From Oopsacas minuta (lineage: Eukaryota; Animalia; Porifera): 20,344 nucleotides of DNA. The stretch covers positions 1-20,344 of the forward strand of contig JAKMXF010000114.1 in assembly GCA_024704765.1 (NCBI GenBank). Reading direction: 5' to 3'. The position numbers and the translations under genes were made by a program. This document shows positions 3 to 20,344 of the stretch, piece by piece. Below the pieces are notes generated by a model. That model was given only the letters and a program-made list of their open reading frames with translations, did no database searches and had not been told where the DNA came from. Numbering within the stretch: position 1 is the first letter of the stretch; the number at the start of each line of letters is the position of its first letter.

Positions 3-620
3 GGAATAATCGATCAAACTGGTAACAAATGTCTTTTCGTTAGTTGTATCGATCAAGCAGATAAATATCGTCTGCTATTCGACCTTAAAGATCGAATAAT
101 TACCATTTATCCGGATTTCGAGCGAATTTTTGATGATGAAAGCGTTTCAGAGGATAATAATCCTCAGTTAGAAAAATTTGACGCCATTCCAAATCTCAAT
201 ATAGTATTGAATCGTAATGACGAGATAGCAATCGTTTCCAAACCACAGCATATGATTCAGAGCACACAATTAGGATCTGATAATTCTATATTGTCTGAAA
301 CTTATCCACCAAATTCCAATCAATGCTTAAATATGTCAGAATTTGCAGAAAATCCACTACATGCTAGCACAATATGTGAACCTATATCTGTGTATCATAC
401 TGGAAACTTGGAGTTAAGTCAATCCGCAACGAACCTTGATTTTCTACAGCAATTAAATCGAGAACAATTACTCACGCTTTTGCAACAAATGTGTAAAGAT
501 AGGAAATTCCTTAAAGAATGTCGTAAAACTCACAGAGTACTATTCACTCGTGATAGTGTATCATCTTCTACAACTGTGAAACGACCGAAGAGAGATAGGA
601 AATGGTATCACCTGTACTGA
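3..620 (+). CDS. A1: 3' part of an AIG1/GIMAP-like degenerate GTPase (5'-partial at the window edge)
   Basis: Frame 3 is open from position 3 (GIIDQTGNKCLFVSCIDQADKYRLLFDLKDRIITIY...), so the ORF-track start at 207 is internal. Nt 1-111 match the reverse complement of 19733-19843 at 106/111. It shares the C-terminal motif QQLNRExLxxLxQxMCxDxK with A2. Confidence 0.88.
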   Translation, partial: GIIDQTGNKCLFVSCIDQADKYRLLFDLKDRIITIYPDFERIFDDESVSEDNNPQLEKFDAIPNLNIVLNRNDEIAIVSKPQHMIQSTQLGSDNSILSETYPPNSNQCLNMSEFAENPLHASTICEPISVYHTGNLELSQSATNLDFLQQLNREQLLTLLQQMCKDRKFLKECRKTHRVLFTRDSVSSSTTVKRPKRDRKWYHLY

Positions 621-978: not shown

Positions 979-1998
979 ATGGGAAATACACACGGAGGTA
1001 CAGTCGCCAGAAAGAAAGATTACGACAATTATACAGTTATGCTGGTTGGGAATATGGGTGCAGGAAAGAGCAGTCTTGGAAACTTTCTACTGAAGAAAGA
1101 ACATTTTGTAGCCGCGGACAGTTTGGCACGAGTAACAGACAAGAACATGTGTGAGTGTACGAGTCTACCAGATGGTCTTACTCTAAGGATTATCGACACT
1201 CCAGGATTTGGAGACTTTAGGAAAAGCGAAGAAGTCAAGAGAGACCTGGCTGATGCTTTCTATGAAGCTAAAGATGGTGTGGATGCGTTTCTGTTTGTGA
1301 TAAGTTCAGCTGAACGAATCGGGAAAGAAAAGGTTTCACAATTTGAAATGTTTAAAAATTTTAACGACCATGAACATTTCTATGACTACGTAATACCTGT
1401 GTTCACTAAGGTTGATCAAAGGTTACAGAAAAAAGGCGAGAAGGACATCTACTCCTATGAGAAGCAAGAACGCTTAATTAATAGCGAACTTGAAAGCAAA
1501 CAGTTGGACATTTTCAGGGACAAAATTATTGCAAGAACTAAACAAAATTGGATGTGTATTTCTTCTACATCTAACGATGAATTCTACTACAGAGTTATAA
1601 TAAAACGACTGATTCAAACTATTGAAAGCATTCGTATTGAAAGACATGGAATGGTTTGCACAAGTAACATTATGGATAAGGCAAGAGTCCTGGATGATTT
1701 CGAGAAAGAGAGAAACAGGAGAGCAGAACAACAAGAAGTGAAGAGGGTAGTTGTTGGATTTCTACTGCATATCTTGCTTAATCAAATGCAAGGAGATGAT
1801 TTTGATGAAATATTCGGGGACGACAAGGAACGGCAGAAAAGGAATACAGAAAAGAAGGAGGCAGACAAGACGGAAGCAGTTGATAAAGAAAGAGACACCA
1901 AACAATCTGCAAGTAAAGAACTTTCTGATTCAGCTATAGCTACTGCTGCTGATATTCCGCGGTTGTTAAGTATTGAAGTAAAGAGCAAACCAATATAA
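979..1998 (+). CDS. B1: AIG1/GIMAP-like P-loop GTPase, 339 aa, probable N-myristoylation
   Basis: G1 GNMGAGKSS, switch I RVT, G3 IIDTPGF, conserved-box-like DAFLFVISSAER, G4 FTKVD. N-terminus is MGNTHGG; C-terminus is charged and helical. Paralog of B2. Confidence 0.92.
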   Translation: MGNTHGGTVARKKDYDNYTVMLVGNMGAGKSSLGNFLLKKEHFVAADSLARVTDKNMCECTSLPDGLTLRIIDTPGFGDFRKSEEVKRDLADAFYEAKDGVDAFLFVISSAERIGKEKVSQFEMFKNFNDHEHFYDYVIPVFTKVDQRLQKKGEKDIYSYEKQERLINSELESKQLDIFRDKIIARTKQNWMCISSTSNDEFYYRVIIKRLIQTIESIRIERHGMVCTSNIMDKARVLDDFEKERNRRAEQQEVKRVVVGFLLHILLNQMQGDDFDEIFGDDKERQKRNTEKKEADKTEAVDKERDTKQSASKELSDSAIATAADIPRLLSIEVKSKPI

Positions 1999-2479: not shown

Positions 2480-2880
2480 TTGTGGACATAAAGTGTTCGC
2501 ATGGGACTCGGCACGTCGTGCCTCGAATTTAGCAAAGTATAAAATTGCAAATTGAATTAATCAATTAATATTTCAACAATCTTTTACTTTATATTCATAA
2601 AAGCAACAAAGAATTTATATAAAAGAAACTTGAATATGCTAATTCGGATACAGCGTCCTTTGATATCCATCTATAGCCGTTAAGAGCAAGTCTCTACTTG
2701 AGAACGCGAAATTGGATTCAGCGTACTTGATTCCCCCTATATGTCTGTTGGGAGCAAGTCTAAGTATATTTCGAGATTTCAACTGTTTGTTTACTTTATA
2801 TTCATAAAAAACAACAAATATATTCACATATGATTATTTCGAAAATGTGAAAATCGGAATCAGCACACTCGATTACCCCA
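2480..2880 (+). repeat. Degenerate, tandemly rearranged fragments of the fold-back element family seen at 8453-8943
   Basis: 2480-2696 resembles the element's arm (ggactcggcac..gcctcgaattt..aaagtataaaattgcaaa). 2697-2789 matches the reverse complement of its right inner arm (cttgagaa..ggattcagcgtact..aagtatatttcgagatttcaact). 2790-2880 repeats the ttcataaaaa.caacaaa..tcagc..gattacccc block. Confidence 0.8.
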
Positions 2881-4522
2881 ATGTAATTATTAATTTTTCC
2901 TATATCGTGAGTATTTTCAACTCATGACACAGTGTAACAATTTTACCATTTACCGCCATCATTCATAGGTTCACTGAGTGACACAGGGTTAGAAGTTTCT
3001 TATTCAGGAGCATTTCATATAATTTTAGAAACTGATATATTAGAATACATAGATTGCGAATACCAGAAAATCATGCAAGAGAATTCATCTTGGGTGTTTC
3101 TGAACTATAAATTCCATGGCGATGATATTTGCAATAAACAACAACATCATAAATAAATAGAACACTATTATAGCTTCACAGTGTATAGGCGTTTCTGACT
3201 AGGATTAAATTTCGCTTACATCGTAATCTACTAGATTATCCTATGAACTAACTCGTGATTGTGTGATATTTCACATTTGGTGCAGGTTTGTTGTTTTTCT
3301 ATGCTTATTTTGATTTTTTCTTTCAAATTTTTGAATATTTATACAATTTTCGCATTTATGTGCCTAATTTAGGAAATAATCTTGAATTCTAGGTTCTGAG
3401 GTAATAGAAAATTATTTCAAACTGCTTAGAAAATCGTGGAAATTATTGAGGCACTCAATCTGATAATTGTGAAACTACATGGACGTTTCCTCGAATATAC
3501 CTGGGTATATTCTGGGCTGCTACACGGGGGCCTGTGGAAATGGGGTGAAAAATAGACCGAATTCCTTGTTCCATACAAATGAATCTATCAAATGCGAAAA
3601 CTGATAGCAATTTTCTCATTTTGTGGAGGTTATCCTGTATATTTAGTGACTACTATTTTGTTTCGAATAAAGAAGTACGTCTTATGGATATGCATACCTT
3701 GACAAGGCTATGTGCCGCTCGGTTTGTATTTTGTCTCATTTTACACATGTTGTGTATATAACTACCCTTGGTTCTGATTATCATTAGTTTGCAACCTACT
3801 GAGTACTGACTCCTGGCACTCCTGGCAGTCTAGATAGCTAGTCTCATGTGATAAAGGCTTATAGCATAGATAGCATAGTAAGTAATAGTAAATATCCTAG
3901 CCATATGATCGACAAAGGTTGGTAGATATGAACTCTATGAATATAATTATTTCAGCTCGGTTAAAGTATATACGTATCACGAAATGACCGAAGTCTAATG
4001 ATATAATCTGGCCGACTGGGGTAGAAGAATATTGAGAGGTTTAGAGCTCCCCAACACTCGTATAACGCCAGTATTTAGCAAGAGTAAAATAAAACTCTTT
4101 AGGAAAAGTTTTCACCTCATTGTTTACAATACAAAATTGTAAATAATGGGGTGAAAATTTACTATACAAAAATGTGAAGTCAGCGCCCTAGATGGATGTT
4201 TCGGGGGGCCTTACCCCCGACCCCCAGGTTTTACGCCTATGCCCTATGCTATCCATGCTATGTGACTGTCCTAATATTGAAAGAATTAGATATGTACACA
4301 GTAATAGTCAGGTAAACTTCCGAGATGCATCATCATCGGGAGTAACCGCTTGTGCCGTCTTTCGTAGGTTCCATGTAATGTATTATCAGCATATGAAAAT
4401 AATCTGTAGAGTATGGTATGCTGCACCTAGAAGGTCTGTAGCATTCAAGGTTTACCCATAATTAATTAACTCAGAATTATAACGAATATATTTCATGTTT
4501 CAAATACAAATGATTAGTAAAT

Positions 4523-4956
4523 ATGGAAGCAATTTGGAAATTTTTCAGTTTCTTTCAAAACAATCAAGAATTTCAAACTGTTTCCAATGATTCTGAAGTT
4601 AAAATACGGGATGAAGGTTTGGCTGACAATCCCAAAATGAAAGAATTATTGGATAATCCATTTGAAGCTATCCAAAATAATGAAAAGTTAAGAAACGCCG
4701 TGTTTGCGCAACAGAAACAAATAGGTTGGAATATTTTACCAACAACAAGTGAATACGTTACGAAAGATAACTCCACTGATCTCGGGTTAATCAAACTGAA
4801 TCATAAAATACGAATACAGCCATTGAGAAATGAAACAGGTTTAGTGAACATTTTGATGTTTGGAAAGAGTGGTTGTGGACAAACTACATTACTTTCCTAT
4901 CTAACTAAGAACAATCAGTTGAAAGGTGTAGACTCAATGTCTACTCAACAGTTCTA
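4523..4956 (+). CDS. A3: 5' fragment of an A-type degenerate GTPase, truncated at the N at 4957
   Basis: MEAIWKFFSFF...NILMFGKSGCGQTTLLSYLTKNNQLKGVDSMSTQQF. Nt 4827-4956 match the reverse complement of 20215-20344 at 129/130. Confidence 0.88.
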
Positions 4957-4957
4957 N
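4957..4957. other. Single N, probable contig junction or gap
   Basis: Two truncated A-type CDSs end exactly on either side of this base. Confidence 0.8.
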
Positions 4958-5229
4958 TTGATTAACCCGAGATCAGTGGAGTTATCTTTCGTAATGTATT
5001 CACTTGTTGTTGGTAAAATATTCCAACCCATTTGTTTCTGTTGCGCAAACACGGCGTTTCTTAACTTTTCATTATTTTGGATAGCTTGTAATGGATTATC
5101 CAATATTTCTTTCATTTTGGGATTGTTAGCCAAACTTTCATCCCGTATTTTAGCTTCAGGATCATTGGAAACAGTTTGCGATTCTTGATTGTCTCGAAAG
5201 AAACTCAATAATTTCGAAAAGAATTCCAT
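4958..5229 (-). CDS. A4: N-terminal fragment of another A-type paralog, truncated at the N at 4957
   Basis: MEFFSKLLSFFRDNQES...STDLGLI is colinear with A3 codons 1-90, with 17 amino-acid differences. Confidence 0.85.
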
Positions 5230-7247
5230 ATTTACTAATCATTTGTATTTGAAACATGAAATATTTTCGTTATAATTCTGAGTTAATTAATTATAGGTAA
5301 ACCTCGAAAGCGGCAGACCTTCTAGGTGAAGCATACCATATTCACAGATTACTTTTACTAATTATTCCTATGCAGATAATACATTACATGTAACCTCTGA
5401 AATAAAGCACAAGTGGTTACTCCCGATGATGCTGCATCTCGGAAGTCTACCTGACTATTACTGTGTACAGATGTCTAATTTTTCAATATTAGGACATTCG
5501 ATTTATGCCTAATTAAGTCCCCGAGTTCGTTGTTATTTAATGTATCTTATTAATTATTCCATTTATTTTTAGCGGTGGCGCTATACGGGTCTTGGGGAAC
5601 TATAAACCTCTTCTAGACCCCCAGTCGGCAGATTATTAGACTTCGGCCTTTTCATGATACGTATAAACTTTAATCCAGCTGAAATAAATATATTCTTAGA
5701 GTTCATATCTACCAACCTTTGTCAATCATATGGCTAGAATCAGTGCAATATTTATCCTGGACGACATTCAAAAGTACCCGAAACCTAATAATTTCGCACG
5801 CTCGCTACCCTCGCTTGTAAAATAGTTTAAAGTATGTACTCAACCCAAGAGACATCATGCAGGCATCCAGGAATTCGCTCTATTCAATTACTATTTATTG
5901 AAACATCACAGTGTTTACAATTGTGTGTGTCAGGTTATGAGATTTTATAGTTCAATATTAACGAATTTCGTCGACCTTTTCATAATGGATTGTTGGCCAA
6001 GATGTAGTTTTGAGATCTATAAAATATGCCTATGGCCACCACTGATTATGAATTATAATAATTATCAATCAATACATATTTTGAAAACAGCTCTTTTCGC
6101 AACTCCCTAGGATACCTGATTTCTCGTTAGAAACTAATGACTAGCACAATATTTATTTACAAATGTGCAAATTAAGATTTATCATATTGTAAACATCATT
6201 TTGTGACTATTTCATAGTTTAAAGCCAATCATACACCATGGAACTTTGTTATATGTATGTTTGTTGGAATTTTTATGCAAATTTATTGTATGCAACATGC
6301 CGTTACATTTGAATAGTTTATACCACAAATTGCATGTGAATGGTGGATATAATGTTTATAGAATTTCACAGTTTCCATTGCCCCATGTTATCATCAGTTA
6401 AACTGTGTGAAAATATGATTGATCGTATGATATCTACATTTGATACTTTTCGGACCGCGCAGGCTGACATGGTCTCGAAGAAATAGTAATAACCTACTTT
6501 ACATACTTATAATCATACCTCGTAACAAAAATTCCTACAAACACCTTTGTGATGTCAAATAATACAGATAAATAATAAACGATATATGAGTAGAAATTGC
6601 GAAAATAGAAACCATAATAAACTCACGAATCTGTCGATTATTATTTGTATCACCAAATAGTAGTTCTAGATGTCCAATTAATTTTATACAAAAGGAGGAT
6701 AAATATGAATTATTTATATACGTAGATCAGTATTGAGCTGAGTATTCTATTGCATACATCGTAATATACTAATATTATATGTTAAATTCCCACGGAGATT
6801 ACATCATATAGCATTATTCTATTTAACATCTTGTACACTTCTTATAGTATAAGTTTTGAGATTATATCATAACTCAACTCATTTCCAACCTCAGGTTTAT
6901 ATTGGTAATACTATGAGGCGGAGTTTCCGTCTGTTACGTACTGCTAACATAGCTTGCTATGAGAAAATAACGCTCAAAAATTTTGTGCGATTTTCTCGTG
7001 TTAATTTCCTTGAGCTGATATTTCCATAATCATAAGTTATCCTGAATTTGTATAGATTTACTTAATTACTTAAATATGGTTTATCCTTCCTTATTTAAGT
7101 TTCATTGAATTTGAAAATCAATATTGTAAGAATTATTAGCATTTAATACATCCAATATATCGTATAAAGTATATGGTTATTATAATTTTATTCTTTCATA
7201 AATACTTGTGTAAAGGCCAAAATTTAGTAGAGCTTATTCTATCAATA

Positions 7248-8030
7248 TTATCTACGCTTTTCAACCATCAGGACAAATAACAGCATACCAGCGGTAACCA
7301 CAGCAACCAGATATAGAATCGTAGTAGAAAGTACTCCCAATGCTATTAGCTTGAAAAACTCATACACATATAATAACATTGACACATACGTTCTCTCTAG
7401 ACAGCCTTCATTGTATATCTGCATGAAATCAGCTGTATCGCATTCAGTAGCGTTATAAAACACTTTACAACAACTGGATGGAATGTTTGACATATTTTCA
7501 TAACTGTCTGGTCCTTCGGGCCCGCAGCATTTCAATACTTGATGAAGTTTATCAATAGATGACTGATTTATTCGCTGTCTATCTGTGAAGTATCTCTTAT
7601 GGAAGATTCCAGAATAATCTTTGACATAGTTTTCATAGGAAAGCTCAATAGATATTGCGTTCCCATATGAGCCGCCTGTCAATTGAATGACAGTGGCAAG
7701 AAGCAGTATGTAGATGGTTGCACCGAGTAGAGCGATTGAAATCAATTTTGTATTATTTCGAGGTGAAAAGCTAGCGACAAACGCACCTAATACATTTGTT
7801 ATACATGCAATAAATAGTAACACCCCGCTGATCAATGTTGTTATGTAAAGCACTTTAAAGTGATGGCCATTCACTGGAGATGGTAGTTGAAATGTTTCGA
7901 GAATATTTCTGTTCGCTGCGTCGAAAACAGTTAAATAACTCCCAACAGCAAGCATTACAAGTGACATCATGAATTCAATACTTCCCATAATGGAGCATAC
8001 TAATATTAGAACAAATCTCAACTTCTTCAT
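7248..8030 (-). CDS. Tetraspanin, 260 aa, intronless
   Basis: Four hydrophobic segments (three N-terminal, one C-terminal). The large extracellular loop has CCG (LKCCG), PSSCC and EGC. Confidence 0.93.
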   Translation of the reverse strand: MKKLRFVLILVCSIMGSIEFMMSLVMLAVGSYLTVFDAANRNILETFQLPSPVNGHHFKVLYITTLISGVLLFIACITNVLGAFVASFSPRNNTKLISIALLGATIYILLLATVIQLTGGSYGNAISIELSYENYVKDYSGIFHKRYFTDRQRINQSSIDKLHQVLKCCGPEGPDSYENMSNIPSSCCKVFYNATECDTADFMQIYNEGCLERTYVSMLLYVYEFFKLIALGVLSTTILYLVAVVTAGMLLFVLMVEKRR

Positions 8031-9718: not shown

Positions 9719-10891
9719 CTACAACTCAGAGAGAGTATCCTCCTCTCTCGTATTGATCAAATAGAGAAAGATTATAATAACAAAACTCAGAAAATGAATA
9801 AATTAGTTGAGACATTGAATACAAATAAATCAATGAATTCAGATACAATAACAGATAACGAATTGAAAGACACTCTAGATGGAGTTATATCATTAATCAA
9901 CAAGATAACAGAACTAACATCTGAGACAGACATTAGTATTGAGTTTGGATGGAACAATCAATTTGAGACTGACATAGAACAGCTAGGGAGCATTAAGCTT
10001 AATAATCAGACTGACATATCTCCCACCCGCACCTTCCCTCCTCAAGTGAAGCCTGTTGTACCTAACTACAAGGCTAAACAGCTGCCTACTGCTTACTACT
10101 GTAATCATTCAGACAAGAAAGCTCCAGGAGAACTGTACTATCCCAGAGGTATAGCAGTTCTTAACCAAACTGGAGACATATACATAGCGGATTATTGCAA
10201 CGATCGTGTACAAGTATTTAGCTGTAACGGAGACTATCTCTTCATGTTCAGTGAGAAGATGGAAAATCCAGTAGGTATCTGTATATCTCAGAATAAAGTG
10301 TTTGTTACACAATGGTATGGTCATTGTATTAATAATTACGAGCTAGAAGGGAAACTAATCAAGAGTGTTGGTAGTAAAGGGAATGGAGAAGCTCAGTTCG
10401 ACGGTCCACGCGGTCTAGATGTCTCTGATAGAAATAGCAATGTGTATGTATGTGATTGTAATAATCATAGAGTTCAAATCTTAACTCAAGAATTCAAGTT
10501 CCATTCCATGCTAGGGATTGATTTGTTCAACCATCCACGTTACGTTAAGGTTACAAGGGACAGAGTATTGGTGCTAGATGAGAGTGATTCGTGTATGTTT
10601 GTGTTCAATTCAGATCACGTTCTAACCAACAGACTGATAACTAGAGGTGGTGGCAAACAAACAAACTATCCATGCTGTTTCGACATAGACAGAGACTATA
10701 ACATCATTATGAGTGACTACAGAAATCACTGTGTGTACGTATTCAATCAGGAGGGAGAACAGATACACAAGTTTGGGAAGGAAGGTCAGGGTATCGGGGA
10801 GTTCATTAATCCCTGGGGAATAGCACTAGACAACACAGGACACATTATTGTTGTGTGTAAGAAGAATACTAATTGTCTACAATTCTTTTGA
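9719..10891 (+). CDS. Coiled-coil plus six NHL repeats (TRIM-NHL-like beta-propeller), probably 5'-partial
   Basis: Six NHL repeats (YPRGIAV..IYIADYCNDRVQVF, GPRGLDV..VYVCDCNNHRVQIL, NPWGIAL.. etc.). The frame is open 25 codons upstream of ATG 9794 (LQLRESILLSRIDQIEKDYNNKTQK) to the N. Confidence 0.9.
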   Translation, partial: LQLRESILLSRIDQIEKDYNNKTQKMNKLVETLNTNKSMNSDTITDNELKDTLDGVISLINKITELTSETDISIEFGWNNQFETDIEQLGSIKLNNQTDISPTRTFPPQVKPVVPNYKAKQLPTAYYCNHSDKKAPGELYYPRGIAVLNQTGDIYIADYCNDRVQVFSCNGDYLFMFSEKMENPVGICISQNKVFVTQWYGHCINNYELEGKLIKSVGSKGNGEAQFDGPRGLDVSDRNSNVYVCDCNNHRVQILTQEFKFHSMLGIDLFNHPRYVKVTRDRVLVLDESDSCMFVFNSDHVLTNRLITRGGGKQTNYPCCFDIDRDYNIIMSDYRNHCVYVFNQEGEQIHKFGKEGQGIGEFINPWGIALDNTGHIIVVCKKNTNCLQFF

Positions 10892-11255: not shown

Positions 11256-11711
11256 CATTCAACTCCCGTCATATCTAAGCTCAAGGAACCGCGAAAATGA
11301 CTTCGTTATAACCGATGAATGTACAGTCGAACCTCCGAGATCCGGACCTCCAAGATACGGGCACCTCCCTCAACCGGGCACCCTTATTTTATATCAGTCC
11401 AAAAGAATTTCACCATTTCATATAATTCTCCTCATACTAACGTTGACTTCAGCTACTACATTCATATGGGATTACGTTTGTATACAGTAAGTAAACTTAA
11501 TAACAGAATTCGAATACCTAAGGGAACTCATATGTACATTATGGGTTGTAACTACCATAGAGTTAATGATATTTCCGAGATCCAGGCACCCTCCGGTCCC
11601 ACACTGCCCGGATCTCGGAGGTTCTACTGTATGTTGCTTTTGACGTTTTGGGACTGGAATGGGACCATATTTGTACAATTCCACATTTCGGTATAACGGG
11701 AGTTGACTATG
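11256..11711. mobile_element. Older pogo/Tc1-mariner-like MITE (outer host of a nested insertion)
   Basis: Imperfect TIRs: TA|cattcaactcccgtcatatc on the left and ggtataacgggagttgactatg|TA on the right. An internal ttcgttataaccga motif is present. Confidence 0.65.
11324..11629. mobile_element. 306-bp pogo/Tc1-mariner-like MITE
   Basis: 22-bp TIRs CAGT(C/A)GAACCTCCGAGATCCGG with 1 mismatch, flanked by TA at 11322-11323 and 11630-11631. Confidence 0.9.
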
Positions 11712-11771
11712 TAATGTTATCACAATTTTGAGATTAATGAATTAATTAATTTTCTATTTATAGCTATCCCA

Positions 11772-12527
11772 ATGTTAGACCTACTATTTGAGATCAGCTG
11801 TGGTGTTATATACTTATTATCCACACCTTTTTGGTTTGTAATACAAGCTATAGAATATGTATTATACCTAGTGGTTCAATGTCTGTATTTGTGTGTATTC
11901 AGCTTAATCCCATTCTTACTGACAGTAGTAATACCGTTCATATGGGAGTATGTTGGATCTCCAATCACAGATATTCTCATTTTTATCGGTAAATACGTTG
12001 TGGATATTGCATTGATTATTATCAACTTTCTGCTATACCCTCCTATACCTTCTGGTATTGGTAAAATCGTGCTTATATTCGCTAGTGCTTATTTTCTGAT
12101 GAGATTTTCAAATTTTTTCCTAAAACAAGCTTTAAATCCGATTTTCGTAACGATTGACCTCTATTTCTCTCCGCTATTAATTCCTTTCAAACTTGTTTAC
12201 TCGGGGCTAAAGTTTGTTTATACAGCAGCTCGTGGCGGTAAGAAACAACAACAAACTCCCGAGGAGATAATACCGGAATATTTGACACAAGTACGACCAG
12301 TCGAACAGCCATTACAGAGAGCCAGACGACGAATAGTTAAAATCACAAATCCAGATGACACCTTGTGCATAGTTTGCTTTACTAACCCCAAATGTATGTT
12401 AATAAGGCCTTGTAATCATGCTTGTTTATGTGTTGACTGTGCTAAAATGTTAACTGAAGAAATGCCAGTAACGGAATGTCCTCTATGTAGAACTATTATT
12501 AATCGAATTGAAAGAATTTACATATAA
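11772..12527 (+). CDS. RNF26: Multi-pass membrane E3 ligase with a C-terminal RING-HC finger, RNF26-like
   Basis: A long hydrophobic N-terminal half is followed by the terminal RING CIVC..PCNHACLCVDCA..ECPLCR..RIYI. This architecture matches RNF26; orthology is untested. Confidence 0.7.
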   Translation: MLDLLFEISCGVIYLLSTPFWFVIQAIEYVLYLVVQCLYLCVFSLIPFLLTVVIPFIWEYVGSPITDILIFIGKYVVDIALIIINFLLYPPIPSGIGKIVLIFASAYFLMRFSNFFLKQALNPIFVTIDLYFSPLLIPFKLVYSGLKFVYTAARGGKKQQQTPEEIIPEYLTQVRPVEQPLQRARRRIVKITNPDDTLCIVCFTNPKCMLIRPCNHACLCVDCAKMLTEEMPVTECPLCRTIINRIERIYI

Positions 12528-13434
12528 TTCCTTTCGGATTTTTTCTTGCTACGAAGTTGTATTCGAGTTTATCAATCTCTATAAATGATTTTATTTCTTC
12601 TTTTGTTAATATTATAGATTTACCAGGGATATATCAATTGCTATGGAGTCTTGTTATACACTAGCTGCATCTGGTTAATTTTGTGGGTGTCTGTAGTATA
12701 TGGGACGATTATATGTCAGCGGTCAATTATCGGAAAGATCTTTCTCCTGAGAACCTAAGCTATAAGGTATGGGTAAAGCAAAATTGAAGAATACTTTCGA
12801 AGCAAACAGCTGATTATTGCAAAATATACCATTATCTGCTAATCTGCTTGTTTTAGTAATCCAAATTTTCACTTTTATGAATATCAAAATGTATTCAATC
12901 TTTACGGGGATTGGCACATGTACTCTGTACCCCTCCACTCCCTGACAACCTAGCAACGCAACCGGACCATAACAATGCACATACAATTAGATTATTAGTT
13001 TGGGCGTATTAGTTAGAACATTCTGTAAAATAAGAATATTATTAACCCATCACAATAGATTAGCTACTGAGATTAAATACTGGTAAGCTCTCTTCTTCTT
13101 TACCACTCTAGTCAGCCTCTCTGTCCTATGACATCAAGGTGTTACAAGAGCGGTACAATATGCTTATACGACACACTCGATTCATATCGAAATGTATAAA
13201 TAGGAGAGCATCCTCAATTAGCAAATATAAATATTTAAAATAAAATCTATGAGAAGTGAGAACACTGGATATAAGAACTATCCGCATGGAAAACGGTTCT
13301 CATATGAACAGTAAATCACTGGTGATGTTCTTATAACTGGCATCAGCCGTAAATGAGTAAATAATAATAATAACAAATGCTTCAACTAATGTATTTATGA
13401 AATCGGATAGAAATCGAACTCCTCGCTTATCGAA

Positions 13435-15630: not shown

Positions 15631-16756
15631 TTAGTATTTCCGGAAGCAGCCTTGATCTTGAATGCCAAAACTCATAATATTATCTGAGTTGTCAAGAATT
15701 ATTTCGTTTAAGAAAGAATGATGTCCTCTACCCAGTATATGCTTCATCGCTCCTTTGAGGTGAGAAGATACGAATTTCGTTAGCAGAACTGTCTAATTAA
15801 GAAGTTGCGCTTCTTATCAATTGTGAAGAAGGTAGGTGCTGTCTTTGGTGGCTGATTCTGTTTAGTTAGCTGTATACTCTTCTGGAGAGCACAGTCTTGG
15901 TTGTAGCAGTAGATGGAGTTGTTGTTTGAGCTAGGGTGTAGATTGTGTCAGAGAATACTGTAATGTCTGAAGGGAGTTTGAGTTTTCCTTAGCCGAACTG
16001 AAATAGAATTCAATATTTGAATTATTTGCATATTCCCAGCACATACATATAGCAACCCAATTTCATAACACAATCCTGAGATATTAGTAAATCGCCCTGG
16101 TGTATTGCCTCTTGAGCCTGTTTCCTTTAGGAATTGTCCTGCTAGGCTAAACTTCACAAGAGACTCTTTAGCTTGATCAGTAACGAATACTTCCTCTTTT
16201 GACAGACATATACCCCATGGCTCCTTCAAGTGGTCAGTCCCAAAAGAACGTAAATACTTTCCTTCGGTATTCAACACTTGAATACGACTGTTGTAATAGT
16301 CACAAATGTAAAGTTCATTACTTGCTCTATCTACTGCTATTCCTTACTAATAGGGTTTTATTTCCTAACGTATTCGGGGATCAGTTCAATCAAATCAATT
16401 TCTGCGATTGTCTTTACAAATGTTATCGCTGTAACAACTGAACTCAACAAACTCCAAATTTCAACCGGCACCTCAACTCTTCTAACTTTTGGATTTGCTC
16501 ATCATATTTTTGTGCCGTTGAATGTTACCAAATGCTAATAAGAATAATTTATCAATTTGCTTTCAATATTCTAAGCTGTTGAATAGCTTCCATTAACTCA
16601 GCATTTCTATCATTACCCTCCTTCATTTTGATCAGTCGAGATCTTAAATTTCTCTGAATCATCCGAGACACGCGTAAAGTTCGCCAAAATTTGCAGAACC
16701 TCTGCCATCAACAAATTCGTAATTTGGTTGATATCGAATTCTATTGCTGTGACCAT
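15631..16756 (-). pseudogene. Coiled-coil plus NHL-repeat pseudogene with multiple frameshifts and stops
   Basis: Fragments lie in changing frames from ATG 16756: ..KMKEGNDRNAELMEAIQQLRILK.., EIDLIELIPEY, GIAVDRASNELYICDYYNSRIQVL, KEPWGICLSKEEVFVTD, GKLKLPSDITVF, FFTIDKKRNFLI, KHILGRG..GCFRKY* (stop at 15631-15633). Confidence 0.85.
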
Positions 16757-17377
16757 TTCGTCTGAAACAAAGTGTGTGTATTTGAAATGGTTACAATTTG
16801 TTTATTCAACTCTAAATGTTGTTATTTGTTTGTAATTTCTCTATTTAGTATTTATATTTTATTTATCTGTGCTTTTATAAATTTATTAAAACACGGTCAT
16901 GGCCGTTTATTATAAACCAATTTGTTGGCCCAAATAAATCATTTTCATCAGATTTTCATTAAATGCTAGGTTACTTCCTTATATGGCGATAATATGATTC
17001 CATTTCTAGAAATTTAGAGGTGTAAGCCATTTGTTGTTAATTTTTTGGAACAGGTGTTTTTAGGGTAATTTGAACATACTGAATCCAAAAATCACTCTTC
17101 CAAGCTGAAATATGACGTAATGACCGTCAAAAATTACTTTGGAATAGCGGCTGTTGGGCTAATTTTCTTAGGCAACACAGAAATATCTCAGGAATGTGGC
17201 AACCAAATACTTTATCACAGCTATATTTATCTTGCTAGCTCCCAAGACTACAAAATCATATTTTGACTGAGGTATTATAAGAGGTAATATTTCGCGGTCC
17301 AGACGGTCCATGGAATTACCGGTACGCTGCAATACTGAATTATACTTATATCCCATCAACCAATGGGTCGGTTAATG

Positions 17378-17622: not shown

Positions 17623-18565
17623 CTATTTCAGATCCTCTGCAGTGCCTGAAGCACCGGTCTGCGCATCTTGTTTCGTGCTAGCTCTCCTATTTTCTGCTTC
17701 CCTCTTCTGTCGTTCTGTATCATTACCAAACATTTCATCAAATTCTTCCCCCTGCATGTTGTTAATTAGGATTTGTAGTATCATCAATAGCACAATTCTT
17801 CTTATTTCTTCTTCTTCAGCTTTTTCGTTCTTCAATCTTTCCATTTTCATCTATATCTTTCACCTTATCCAAGATCCGAGGTGTGCACACCATACCTTTC
17901 CTTTGAGTGCGGATACTTTCGATCGTACCAATCAGTCTATTTGTTATAACTTTGTAGTAGAATGCGTCTTTCGATAAATTGGAAATACACATCCAATTCT
18001 GTCTTGCCCTGCCAATGATTTTGTTCTTGAAAATATCAAGTTGATCATTTTCAAGTTCACTATTAATTAAGCGTTCTTGCTTCTCATAGGAGTAGATGTC
18101 CTTCTCGCCTTTTTTCTGTAACCTTTGATCAACCTTAGTGAACACAGGTATTACGTAGTCATAGAAATGTTCATGTTGCATAAATTCTGCAAACATTTCA
18201 AAGTGTTTAACCAGTTCTCTCCCGATTCGTTCAGCTGAACTTATCACAAACAGAAATGCATCTACACCATCTTTAGCTTGATAGAAAGCTTCAGCTAGGT
18301 CCTTCTTGACTTCTTCGCTACTTCTAAAGTCTCCAAATCCTGGAGTGTCGATAATCCTTAGAGTACGACCATCTGCTAGACTGGTACACTCACTCATGTT
18401 CTTTGCTGTTACTCGTGACATATTGTCTGCAGCTTTAAATACTTCTCTCTTCAGTAGAAAGTTTCCAAGACTGCTCTTTCCTGCACCCATTTTCCCAACC
18501 AACATAACTGTATAATTGTCGTAATCTTTCTTTCTGGCGACTGTACCTCCGTGTTTGTTACCCAT
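17623..18565 (-). CDS. B2: AIG1/GIMAP-like GTPase with a +1 frameshift at 17844-17847 (313 aa if corrected); sequencing error or pseudogenising mutation
   Basis: MGNKHGG, GKMGAGKSS, DTPG, FTKVD. Removing one A from GATGAAAATG joins ORFs 17816-18565 and 17623-17850 and restores a gapless alignment with B1 (DKVKDIDEMERLKNEKAEEEEIRR vs DKARVLDDFEKERNRRAEQQEVKR). Confidence 0.85.
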
Positions 18566-18632
18566 TTTGTTGAGGGCTATTATAGCTATTAGTTAGAATC
18601 AGACTTTTAGACGAAATATTATTATGTATATA

Positions 18633-18849
18633 CAGTAAATATCTGTTATAACAAAGTGATTGTTACCCTATAGCTTGTAAGCAAGGTTGCAACCGAATAG
18701 TTCAGTATTCGGTTAGGCTACTATTCATGAATACTGATATTCGGTTTGAGCGGTTTCAACCTTGCTTGTAAGTAATAAATAGCATTTACCCTCTTACAAT
18801 GAAATGAACCCGAGGTCCCGATACCGTGCGTTATATGGAGAGTTTACTG
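18633..18849. mobile_element. Decayed pogo/Tc1-mariner-like MITE upstream of B2
   Basis: TA|CAGTAAAtatctgtTATAAC on the left and GTTATAtggagagTTTACTG|TA on the right, preceded by ggtccc. The TIRs are imperfect. Confidence 0.5.
18682..18764. mobile_element. 83-bp hAT-like mini-element with an 8-bp target-site duplication
   Basis: A perfect TSD CTTGTAAG at 18674-18681 and 18765-18772. TIRs are CAAGGTTG(C/A)AACCG (13/14), with internal tattcggtt subrepeats. Confidence 0.85.
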
Positions 18850-19223: not shown

Positions 19224-20344
19224 TCAAGGTTGAAATTTTTCCTTTTTCCCTTTTTTCAACGGAGGTTCTTTAGTAAGAAATAGTTTACTAAATTTTTTAT
19301 TGCACAGTTTCCTACCTTTTTTGTCCTGACACATTTCCTGAACTAACTTAATTAACTCTTCTCTATTGAGTTGCTGAATATGGTCAAATTCATCATCTTC
19401 TGCCCCAAAATCCATATTCGGTATTCCACTAATCGTATTAGCACGCATCTTTCTATCCGCGAGGTCAGAGGTATTGTCATCTGTATCATGATGATTGGAT
19501 TTGAATTCTTTCATTTCAAATGATGTAACATTTGAATTTTCACGATTAGATTGTGTGAATGGATGCAGACTAACTATATTATTCCCTTTGAATAATTTTT
19601 TATGGTTGCTCATAGGTAGTTGATGACATTCTCTATGATTGTCCTGCAATTCAACGGATTTTTTAGGGTAAGGTATGCTAGTATTCGAATCAGTTTCCGT
19701 TTCAGATAAATAGCCATTAAATCCGTTAAATCGATAAATGGAAATTATTCGGTCTTTAAGGTCGAATAACAGACGATATTTATCTGCTTGATCGATACAA
19801 CTAACGTAAAGACATTTGTTACCAGTTCGATCGATTATTCCTTTCACTTTCTCCATACCTCGCATTGCTATCTGTGATTCCAGCTTAGCAACTCTCTCTT
19901 CAAACGTGCTACATCCATTCAGTTCATCGATTGTTGTGAATACAATTACAGTTCTCTTCCACATTTCTTCTTTATCCTTGAAATACAATTCTGAAAACTC
20001 TTCCAGTTCATCAATCAATTGTGAGATGATTCTTTCATTTGACTTTATCAAGAGAAGGAAGATACTCACTCCTCCCTCATCATTCACACCTTCTATTAAT
20101 CTGTTCCAGTGTTCTTCCAGTTGTGGAATTTCAAAACCACTACACATGCCTGGAGATTCGTGGATTCGTACTTTAGCCATTTCTGATTTGCTTTGTATAT
20201 CAATGGTTTCAGCATAGAACTGTTGAGTAGACATTGAGTCTACACCTTTCAACTGATTGTTCTTAGTTAGATATGAAAGTAATGTAGTTTGTCCACAACC
20301 ACTCTTTCCAAACATCAAAATGTTCACTAAACCTGTTTCATTTC
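19224..20344 (-). CDS. A2: AIG1/GIMAP-like degenerate GTPase (5'-partial at the window edge)
   Basis: G1 GKSGCGQTT, G3 IHESPG, conserved-box-like SIFLLLIKSNER, G4 FTTID, then a low-complexity linker, the QQLNRE helix and a basic tail. The frame is open to the window end; the ORF-track start at 20327 is an internal GTG. Combined with the A3 N-terminus it would be about 474 aa. Confidence 0.9.
   Translation of the reverse strand, partial: NETGLVNILMFGKSGCGQTTLLSYLTKNNQLKGVDSMSTQQFYAETIDIQSKSEMAKVRIHESPGMCSGFEIPQLEEHWNRLIEGVNDEGGVSIFLLLIKSNERIISQLIDELEEFSELYFKDKEEMWKRTVIVFTTIDELNGCSTFEERVAKLESQIAMRGMEKVKGIIDRTGNKCLYVSCIDQADKYRLLFDLKDRIISIYRFNGFNGYLSETETDSNTSIPYPKKSVELQDNHRECHQLPMSNHKKLFKGNNIVSLHPFTQSNRENSNVTSFEMKEFKSNHHDTDDNTSDLADRKMRANTISGIPNMDFGAEDDEFDHIQQLNREELIKLVQEMCQDKKGRKLCNKKFSKLFLTKEPPLKKGKKEKFQP

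Follow-up and report, generated by a model that had tools for sequence, protein, structure and literature searches.

An AIG1-like subfamily with a glutamine P-loop encoded next to canonical AIG1 GTPases in Oopsacas minuta

In this study, we analyzed a 20,344-bp stretch of the Oopsacas minuta genome (contig JAKMXF010000114.1 of GenBank assembly GCA_024704765.1; hereafter the window), which is a whole contig with a G+C content of about 34% and with long, single-exon eukaryotic genes. Two kinds of genes related to the AIG1 GTPases lie in it: AIG1-like genes with glutamine in place of the Walker A lysine, named A here (A1, A2, and A3), whose products may be non-catalytic partners of their neighbors, and canonical AIG1 GTPase genes, named B (B1 and B2). 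A3 occupies 19224..20344 on the minus strand, where an open reading frame (ORF) and its translation give the 3' 372 codons; the end of the window cuts the gene before its 5' end is reached, and contigs from public sequencing runs continue beyond 20344. The GTG at 20327 is therefore not the true start of A3. The full-length A protein, about 470 aa long, comprises an N-terminal head, a G domain, a variable linker, a conserved helix motif, and a polybasic tail; homologs in other assemblies measure 436-690 aa, and intact ORFs were found in six assemblies. The G domain of A3 (19731..20342, minus strand; 204 aa) has a predicted AIG1/GIMAP fold according to AlphaFold2 (AF2), Foldseek, Pfam, and hhalign.

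On the same strand, 658 bp downstream of A3, lies B2 (17816..18565, minus), a canonical AIG1 GTPase gene by its Pfam AIG1 match (E = 1e-22), whose product begins with the myristoylation-like MGNKHGG and matches GIMAP4 (E = 9e-10) and GIMAP7 (E = 5.4e-8) among the PDB sequences. B1 (979..1998, plus strand; Pfam AIG1 E = 2.9e-20) lies 358 bp downstream of the A1 tail and forms an inverted repeat of 85% identity with B2; GIMAP4 and GIMAP7 are the best PDB sequence matches of both. One base at 17844 is missing from all four public runs relative to the window, and past this point of B2 the B-type C-terminus (EEFDEMFG, then GTAEDL) carries on in the adjacent frame; the shortening of B2 to 249 aa is an assembly indel or a T-run polymorphism, not a true short isoform. 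A1 (3..620, plus) is what the window start leaves of another A gene, its C-terminal 205 codons; its translation aligns with the tail of the A family (P0024), and window bases 1-111 are 95% complementary to 19733-19843. A2 (4523..4956, plus) covers an A gene from the N-terminal head to the P-loop, up to an assembly 'n' at 4957. It is 99% identical to A3 over a 130-nt overlap and may be the missing 5' end of A3 or A1, put there by scaffolding. A diverged, inverted second head follows at 4958-5229 and is 93% identical to the A2 head, and within 4409-5343 the two heads face each other across the single 'n' as an inverted repeat (93%). Over 90 codons the facing heads differ at 17, with 17 non-synonymous and 0 synonymous differences, and the 114 nt upstream hold eight differing sites; the sequences suggest either that the N-terminal head is under diversifying selection or that a palindrome was mis-scaffolded.

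A previous interpretation made from the letters of this stretch (the sequence-only reading) had listed four motifs in A3, namely GKSGCGQT, ESPG, TTID, and LLIKSNER, the last set against FVISSAER in B, and translation of 19224-20342 bore out all of them. The P-loop GKSGCGQT (20286..20309, minus) departs from the G1 Walker A pattern GxxxxGK[ST] by replacement of the Lys with Gln, which is encoded by CAA at 20289-20291. The G3/switch II motif (20148..20159, minus) reads ESPG in place of DTPG and, in all A proteins, departs from DxxG. The conserved-box strand and the loop after it read FLLLIKSNER (20031..20060, minus), with Arg104 encoded by AGA at 20031-20033. The G4 motif TTID (19926..19937, minus) keeps the guanine-specificity Asp and has lost the Lys; it fits T/N-x-x-D and reads FT[TSAG]ID across the A family, where T136, I138, and D139 are invariant. 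The corresponding motifs of B1 and B2 are GNMGAGKS/GKMGAGKS, DTPG, FVISSAER, and TKVD, and a profile-profile alignment (hhalign) of A with B pairs Q with K, ESPG with DTPG, NER with AER, and T.ID with TKVD.

Homologs were collected with a word-indexed protein search, which returned 25 relatives, and an exhaustive profile search of 1.84 billion representatives, which returned 13 at E<1e-30. All 21 A-type G domains, drawn from five other assemblies, carry G.S[GC].GQ[TS], ESPG, and FT.ID. The Walker A position is Gln in 21 of the 21 A proteins (codons CAA in 18 and CAG in one), and in the same alignment Lys fills this position in every non-A relative that covers the P-loop but P0042, which has Arg. 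The sequence-only reading had taken the Gln in both A2 and A3 as evidence against a read error; that argument does not hold as given, A2 being 99% identical to A3 and not an independent copy, but its conclusion stands on the presence of Gln in all 21 A proteins. Four public runs of this organism also have contigs over the Gln codon, with no difference there among the entries listed, a soft negative that depends on the differences listed. A decaying pseudogene, or a sequencing or assembly artefact at the Gln, would fit a small contig in which A genes are cut at both ends, A2 abuts an 'n', and at least one indel relative to the reads is present (in B2), as well as the damaged A copies found elsewhere, such as one with a P-loop deletion (L004 5411-6622); yet intact ORFs of 436-690 aa in six assemblies, a G-domain dN/dS of 0.11, and the Gln in every A protein and in four independent runs free of a listed change at the codon have effectively refuted it on the sequences compared.

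Strictly, as judged from the alignment, only the Walker A Lys is lost among the nucleotide-binding residues of A. The G3 Glu is also found in a Lys-retaining sister clade (P0031, P0032, and P0034; EAPG/ETPG with P-loop GNSGCGKS), and ExPG likewise occurs in some multi-domain AIG1 proteins. Position 2 of G4, Lys in B, is variable in many ordinary AIG1 proteins (H, R, W, F, or S). Gly12, Gly17, and the Mg-site Thr19 of the P-loop and Thr136 and Asp139 of G4 are invariant in A, and S14 and Lys100 are strictly conserved as well, while the switch I Thr is not conserved, reading MSTQ in one subclade and MFAQ in another. The claim that A has lost its nucleotide-binding residues was therefore right for the Walker A Lys and too broad for the rest, since the G3 Glu is shared with a Lys clade, the G4 Lys is variable, and the G4 Asp and P-loop Thr are invariant. 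Catalysis by A is probably gone, and A may still bind guanine nucleotide, given the invariant G4 Asp and P-loop Gly and Thr. Among the pseudoGTPase classes of Stiegler and Boggon (2020), in the outline that PMC10731463 gives of them, we lean toward class II (binding, no hydrolysis) rather than class I (no binding) for A because of the invariant G4 Asp and P-loop Thr.

Another possibility is that A is still an active GTPase or another nucleoside triphosphatase in which the Gln is compensated by a basic residue, for example the invariant Lys100 at the end of beta4 or the P-loop residue Lys13. Strict conservation of the whole pocket (G12, S14, G17, T19, Asp139, and Lys100) would suit such an enzyme, and the GMS proteins of the IRG family show that a P-loop lacking Lys can still bind GTP; however, Lys13 is replaced by Arg or Asn in some A proteins, and Lys or Arg at the Lys100 position also occurs in Lys-type AIG1 relatives. 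To our knowledge, no P-loop GTPase hydrolyzes efficiently without the Walker A Lys, and we consider retained activity of A very improbable. A second, independent P-loop deviation is present in the same gene family, judging from its sequence: the B-type P0042 carries GKIGAGRSS, with Arg for the Walker A Lys, together with Lys in place of the conserved-box Arg (VEKIG).

Taken alone, A3 did not reach the threshold of any Pfam family; for the full-length protein, MMR_HSR1 appeared at E = 0.009, and AIG1 was not listed. The A3 G domain alone scored 20.5 bits against Pfam AIG1 (PF04548; E = 3.2e-4), under the gathering cut-off of 27 bits, and 17 of 18 A family members matched AIG1 at E<0.01 (best 5.7e-7). 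Since the score of A3 falls under the cut-off, A is, at the level of sequence models, a divergent AIG1 relative and not a model-level Pfam member. A hidden Markov model of the full-length A family gave only weak Rab matches (E = 0.012) and no GIMAP among the PDB sequences; sequence alone thus failed to place A, and profile-profile and fold comparisons were needed. A and B, about 25% identical, aligned in hhalign over 191 columns with a probability of 96.7% (E = 3.4e-10), and the ESM Atlas neighbors of A, by features and by structure, were mostly AIG1 proteins. A first AF2 run with an A-only alignment of 18 sequences reached a mean predicted local distance difference test score (pLDDT) of 56.6, with the P-loop and switch I below 50, and was not used. 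With a 49-sequence alignment the model of the A3 G domain reached a pLDDT of 83.8 and a predicted template modeling score of 0.85, values to be read with the caveat for the fold test that this alignment contained AIG1 relatives. The model has a canonical beta1, P-loop, and alpha1, and Arg104 lies in the loop between strand 94-100 and helix 107-120. The top 20 Foldseek matches in the PDB were GIMAP2, 7, 1, 5, and 4 and one Toc33 chain (template modeling scores 0.62-0.72), followed by further Toc33/34 chains. In the predicted structure, A3 is an AIG1/GIMAP-fold protein of the septin/Toc/GIMAP-like kind.

Comparisons of coding sequences between assemblies gave a dN/dS of 0.11 for the A G domain (dS about 1.2), about 0.4 for the N-terminal head, and 0.26 for the tail; the median for the B G domain was 0.12. 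By these substitution rates, A is intact and under purifying selection. The P-loop, switch I, G3/switch II, conserved box, and G4 together have a mean column entropy of 0.52 bits, compared with 1.04 bits in the rest of the G domain, a contrast reached in 0 of 10,000 permutations, and on this measure the non-canonical pocket and the G-interface segments are the most constrained part of A. Such constraint is expected under ligand binding or under a conserved protein interface, and the G-interface of GIMAPs is built from the same elements as these pocket segments (PMC9111091).

The maximum-likelihood tree placed the A proteins in a monophyletic group (95/90) sister to the Lys-retaining clade (99/97), with B in a separate clade (100/99); from this topology, the Lys-to-Gln replacement is a single old derived change on the A stem, and A is no recent copy of B. 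Among the relatives that retain the Lys, the one closest to A, P0031 (L008:831-2213), has the P-loop GNSGCGKS, the G3 motif EAPG, and no conserved-box Arg; no B lies beside it, and it is nested on the same strand between exons of MCM8, those for the MCM P-loop (L008:2-277) and for the lid/winged-helix part (2504-3220). Gene conversion among A paralogs is apparently limited to the G domain. Two A copies of one array (L003:10001-11410 and L003:18043-19413) have a dS of 0.07 in the G domain and of 0.85 and 1.6 in the N-terminal head and C-terminal tail, and the same was seen in L005. Because the G domains of arrays are homogenized in this manner, only between-assembly comparisons were counted as independent, and a mirror-tree or co-duplication test of A and B is uninformative.

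The sequence-only reading had stressed that the Arg after the conserved-box strand is kept in A. Across homologs this is true of 18 of the 21 A proteins, the exceptions being P0003 (NQG), P0012 (NES), and P0014 (NAS). Both AGA (eight genes) and CGA (eight genes) encode Arg104, which indicates that it has been maintained through synonymous change. The Arg has been lost at least twice in terminal branches of A, in P0003 and in the P0012/P0014 pair, the latter two being relatives of the L006 subgroup described below. In B the conserved-box Arg is invariant, and the sister clade has Glu or Lys there. An ungapped block of 15 residues surrounds the Arg (FLLLIKSNER in A, FLFVISSAER in B), and the equivalence of the A and B residues is unambiguous in the alignment. 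The Arg column is common to many AIG1 relatives, and A has the same arrangement of a conserved box with Arg after a hydrophobic strand. The register between B and the vertebrate GIMAPs is less clear: a single-sequence alignment with GIMAP4 pairs Arg with Arg, the ungapped B profile pairs Glu with that Arg, and MAFFT sets sequences of the 'GPHA...GR/K' type in the Arg column by means of a one-residue gap. In B as in GIMAP4, the Arg follows the G3 Asp at a distance of 41 residues. These alignments place the Arg of A and B in the same loop (beta4-alpha3) as the GIMAP Arg, with the exact structural equivalence uncertain by one residue. The finger residue of GIMAP7 is reportedly Arg103.

This residue is central to the proposal that A cannot bind nucleotide and is a dedicated subunit resembling a GTPase-activating protein (GAP), whose Arg104 triggers hydrolysis by B in trans as GIMAP7 does for GIMAP2. 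The underlying literature claim, that GIMAP7 stimulates GIMAP2 with an Arg supplied in trans, was confirmed in secondary sources, which describe GIMAP7 as activating itself and GIMAP2 through dimerization and a catalytic arginine finger (PMC8201404, PMC9111091, PMC8066113). The proposal gains from an Arg that is maintained and not merely inherited (18 of 21 proteins, AGA and CGA codons), that is absent from the unpaired Lys-type sister clade, and that lies in the same beta4-alpha3 loop as in GIMAPs and Toc33. Nevertheless, B has its own invariant Arg at this position, so B homodimers should be self-sufficient, and the Arg-less P0003 is still paired with a B gene. Loss of the Arg does not cleanly track loss of B, the unpaired A genes of L006 mostly keeping it. 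Furthermore, the G-dimer of vertebrate GIMAPs is GTP-dependent, GIMAP6, which shows no GTP binding, inhibits and does not activate, and the match to the vertebrate arginine finger is itself uncertain by one residue. A GAP-like role of a nucleotide-free A appears unlikely on this balance.

The gene order A then B, on the same strand and with spacing of about 0.1-1.2 kb, was found for 15 of 20 A genes in the window and five other assemblies, and it holds for the most divergent A, P0028, which is 46% identical to A3 in the G domain. Every B begins with a conserved MGN...K.KK, which by its sequence looks like an N-myristoylation site followed by a basic patch. The A proteins have a polybasic C-terminal tail; in a few (P0013 and P0016) the end is a hydrophobic segment resembling a tail anchor. 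That A and B are exons of one gene was ruled out by the stop that ends every A, the spacers of about 0.1-1.2 kb, and the MGN start of every B.

The main rival to a partnership of the two proteins is that A acts independently of B, as a GTP-locked or nucleotide-free scaffold, and that their adjacency stems from tandem duplication in a fast-evolving AIG1 cluster; A would then work through its N-terminal head, C-terminal helix motif, and polybasic or tail-anchor end, for example in homo-oligomers on membranes. Several results weigh on this side and against a partnership. Five A genes have no adjacent B, among them the four-gene array L006, and in L004 intact A genes stand beside broken B genes. 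Paired copies have discordant histories, as in L003, where the A G domain has a dS of 0.07 and the partner B a dS of 0.69. Adjacency of A and B in an animal genome could be mere tandem duplication, and the conservation seen among A paralogs is inflated by gene conversion confined to the G domain. Public run searches found no run on record as RNA, and the four runs that hold this stretch behave like DNA, with even intergenic coverage. The independent role is further favored by the tree, in which neither A nor B is a recent duplicate of the other, by the hydrophobic tail of the paralogs P0013 and P0016, and by the 17 non-synonymous and 0 synonymous changes in the N-terminal head, which suggest that the head has a target of its own. 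On the other hand, the A-then-B order, strand, and short spacing persist over six assemblies and down to 46% identity of A, and this would be difficult to account for if A and B were in no way coupled in function or regulation. An independent scaffold role, judged from these sequences, is possible but somewhat unlikely.

Both arrays just cited have features of their own. L006:1730-17584 holds four A genes with long, differing C-terminal extensions (ORFs of about 390-690 aa) and no B between them. In the L004 array the A copy at 5411-6622 lacks the stretch from the P-loop to switch I, and over 5411-6622, 11632-12545, and 16076-16876 one A copy is damaged and two B copies are split into fragments; A-B cassettes decay as well as duplicate.

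The interpretation that we prefer is that A is a hydrolysis-dead, possibly nucleotide-bound, non-catalytic partner that alters B across the G-interface, and from the sequence evidence we put its probability at about 0.5. On this interpretation, A would be a lineage-restricted member of the AIG1/GIMAP-fold GTPase superfamily, on whose stem the Walker A Lys became Gln (GxSGxGQT), the G3 Glu being common to A and its sister clade. It would be a pseudo-GTPase that no longer hydrolyzes GTP and possibly still holds guanine nucleotide, and it would pair across the G-interface with the canonical, probably N-myristoylated B encoded directly downstream. Such pairing may alter the dimerization-driven GTPase cycle of B, with A either capping and inhibiting B or donating its Arg. 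The sequence-only reading, which had cast A as a pseudo-GTPase acting as a GAP-like or inhibitory partner of B, agrees with this in part: a maintained GIMAP-fold protein with a non-canonical P-loop in a conserved cassette supports it, and the invariant Arg of B and the pairing of the Arg-less P0003 with a B gene count against it.

Regulation of active GTPases by non-catalytic paralogs is already known from vertebrate GIMAPs, IRGs, and septins. First, isothermal titration calorimetry showed no GTP binding by human GIMAP6, which acts through the G-interface as an inhibitor of GIMAP7 (Yao et al., 2022, PMC9111091), and this inhibition survives mutation of the interface residue Arg134 (PMC9111091). 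Since GIMAP6, with no GTP binding seen, inhibits GIMAP7 even with Arg134 mutated, the analogy favors an inhibitory role of A over a GAP role. GIMAP6 and GIMAP7 resemble A and B in that a GIMAP-fold paralog stands beside a competent one, with both genes in one cluster; their binding and inhibition have been shown biochemically, whereas A is known here from its sequence. A differs from GIMAP6 in its fixed Lys-to-Gln and Asp-to-Glu replacements, and A and B, only about 25% identical, recur as a two-gene cassette. The P-loop of GIMAP6, for its part, is said to keep the canonical GKS.

GIMAP7 and GIMAP2 likewise share the AIG1/GIMAP fold with A and B, as well as an Arg in the loop that follows the conserved-box strand; their heterodimerization across the G-interface changes the hydrolysis of the partner (Schwefel et al., 2013, as summarized in PMC8201404, PMC9111091, and PMC8066113). 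However, the Arg donor GIMAP7 is active and binds GTP and its recipient GIMAP2 is silent, whereas the proposed donor A is degenerate and the recipient B already has an Arg; in addition, A and B have one residue more in this loop than vertebrate GIMAPs do.

Second, the mouse IRG GMS proteins (Irgm1-3), with Met for the P-loop Lys, retain guanine nucleotide binding and regulate the GKS IRGs through direct contacts that depend on nucleotide (Hunn et al., 2008, PMC2532785). Here too, an immune-type GTPase family has a subfamily-wide replacement of the P-loop Lys (Met in IRG, Gln in A) beside a canonical subfamily, but the IRGs are another GTPase family, not AIG1, and their mechanism, similar to that of a guanine nucleotide dissociation inhibitor, has been shown for IRGs and is an analogy only for A. 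Third, septin pseudoGTPases occupy G-interface heterodimers (PMC10731463). Septins are a related G-dimerizing family in which non-hydrolyzing or non-binding subunits evolved repeatedly, the pocket being tied to the G-interface with an active partner; unlike A and B, they form ordered filaments, have lost the catalytic Thr and not the P-loop Lys, and are not encoded as a two-gene cassette.

The genomic setting has its own precedent. Single-exon AIG1-domain genes are described in Aphrocallistes vastus and O. minuta as expanded in non-syntenic clusters of compact genomes, in the account that PMC10282587 gives of them. These clusters match the gene style of the window, and the intron-poor genome with its nested genes fits a glass sponge; the passages of PMC10282587 that concern them note AIG1 domains only, with no Gln-P-loop subfamily, A-then-B cassette, or Arg. 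Earlier surveys reported no GIMAPs in sponges (PMC8857920), and the AIG1/GIMAP-like genes described here thus point to a wider range of the family than those surveys found. What seems to be new, taken together, is a fixed Gln-P-loop AIG1 subfamily with strong constraint on its pocket and a conserved cassette with a canonical AIG1 GTPase. The dimerization-activated GIMAP, IRG, septin, and Toc GTPases repeatedly evolve non-catalytic paralogs that tune active ones, which for GIMAP/AIG1 proteins is documented only in vertebrates, and A adds a Lys-less AIG1 subfamily that is fixed, constrained in its pocket, and physically coupled to an active paralog in a small, intron-poor genome. If A regulates B, the pair would be a simple two-protein system for the control of an AIG1 GTPase by a partner with a degenerate P-loop, and would allow tests of the conserved-box Arg in trans and of an ancient versus convergent origin of regulator/effector splits.

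A bolder version of this interpretation makes A and B an obligate, asymmetric G-dimer that is hard-wired in the genome, in which A would hold GTP permanently on its Gln P-loop, the Arg of A would complete the site of B, and the Arg of B would be parked on the dead site of A. We regard this version as speculative and doubtful. If true, the dimer would be an early-animal, apparently glass-sponge, counterpart of the regulator/effector splits that the IRG (GMS/GKS), vertebrate GIMAP (6/7 and 7/2), and septin families evolved independently, and half-dead dimers would be a recurrent design of dimerization-activated GTPases.

Other genes of the window are a tetraspanin gene (7248-8030, minus) that flanks the A/B arrays, an NHL-repeat protein gene (9794-10891, plus), and a RING protein gene (11772-12527, plus). 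As in the window, a tetraspanin gene stands beside A/B arrays in L001, L003, and L005, from three other assemblies, which makes the whole locus syntenic. The depth of read contigs rises about 50-fold at 16074-16431 and 18580-18758, with many loose ends; the two segments are short high-copy repeats resembling miniature inverted-repeat or other transposable elements, and one of them lies within the A3-B2 spacer.

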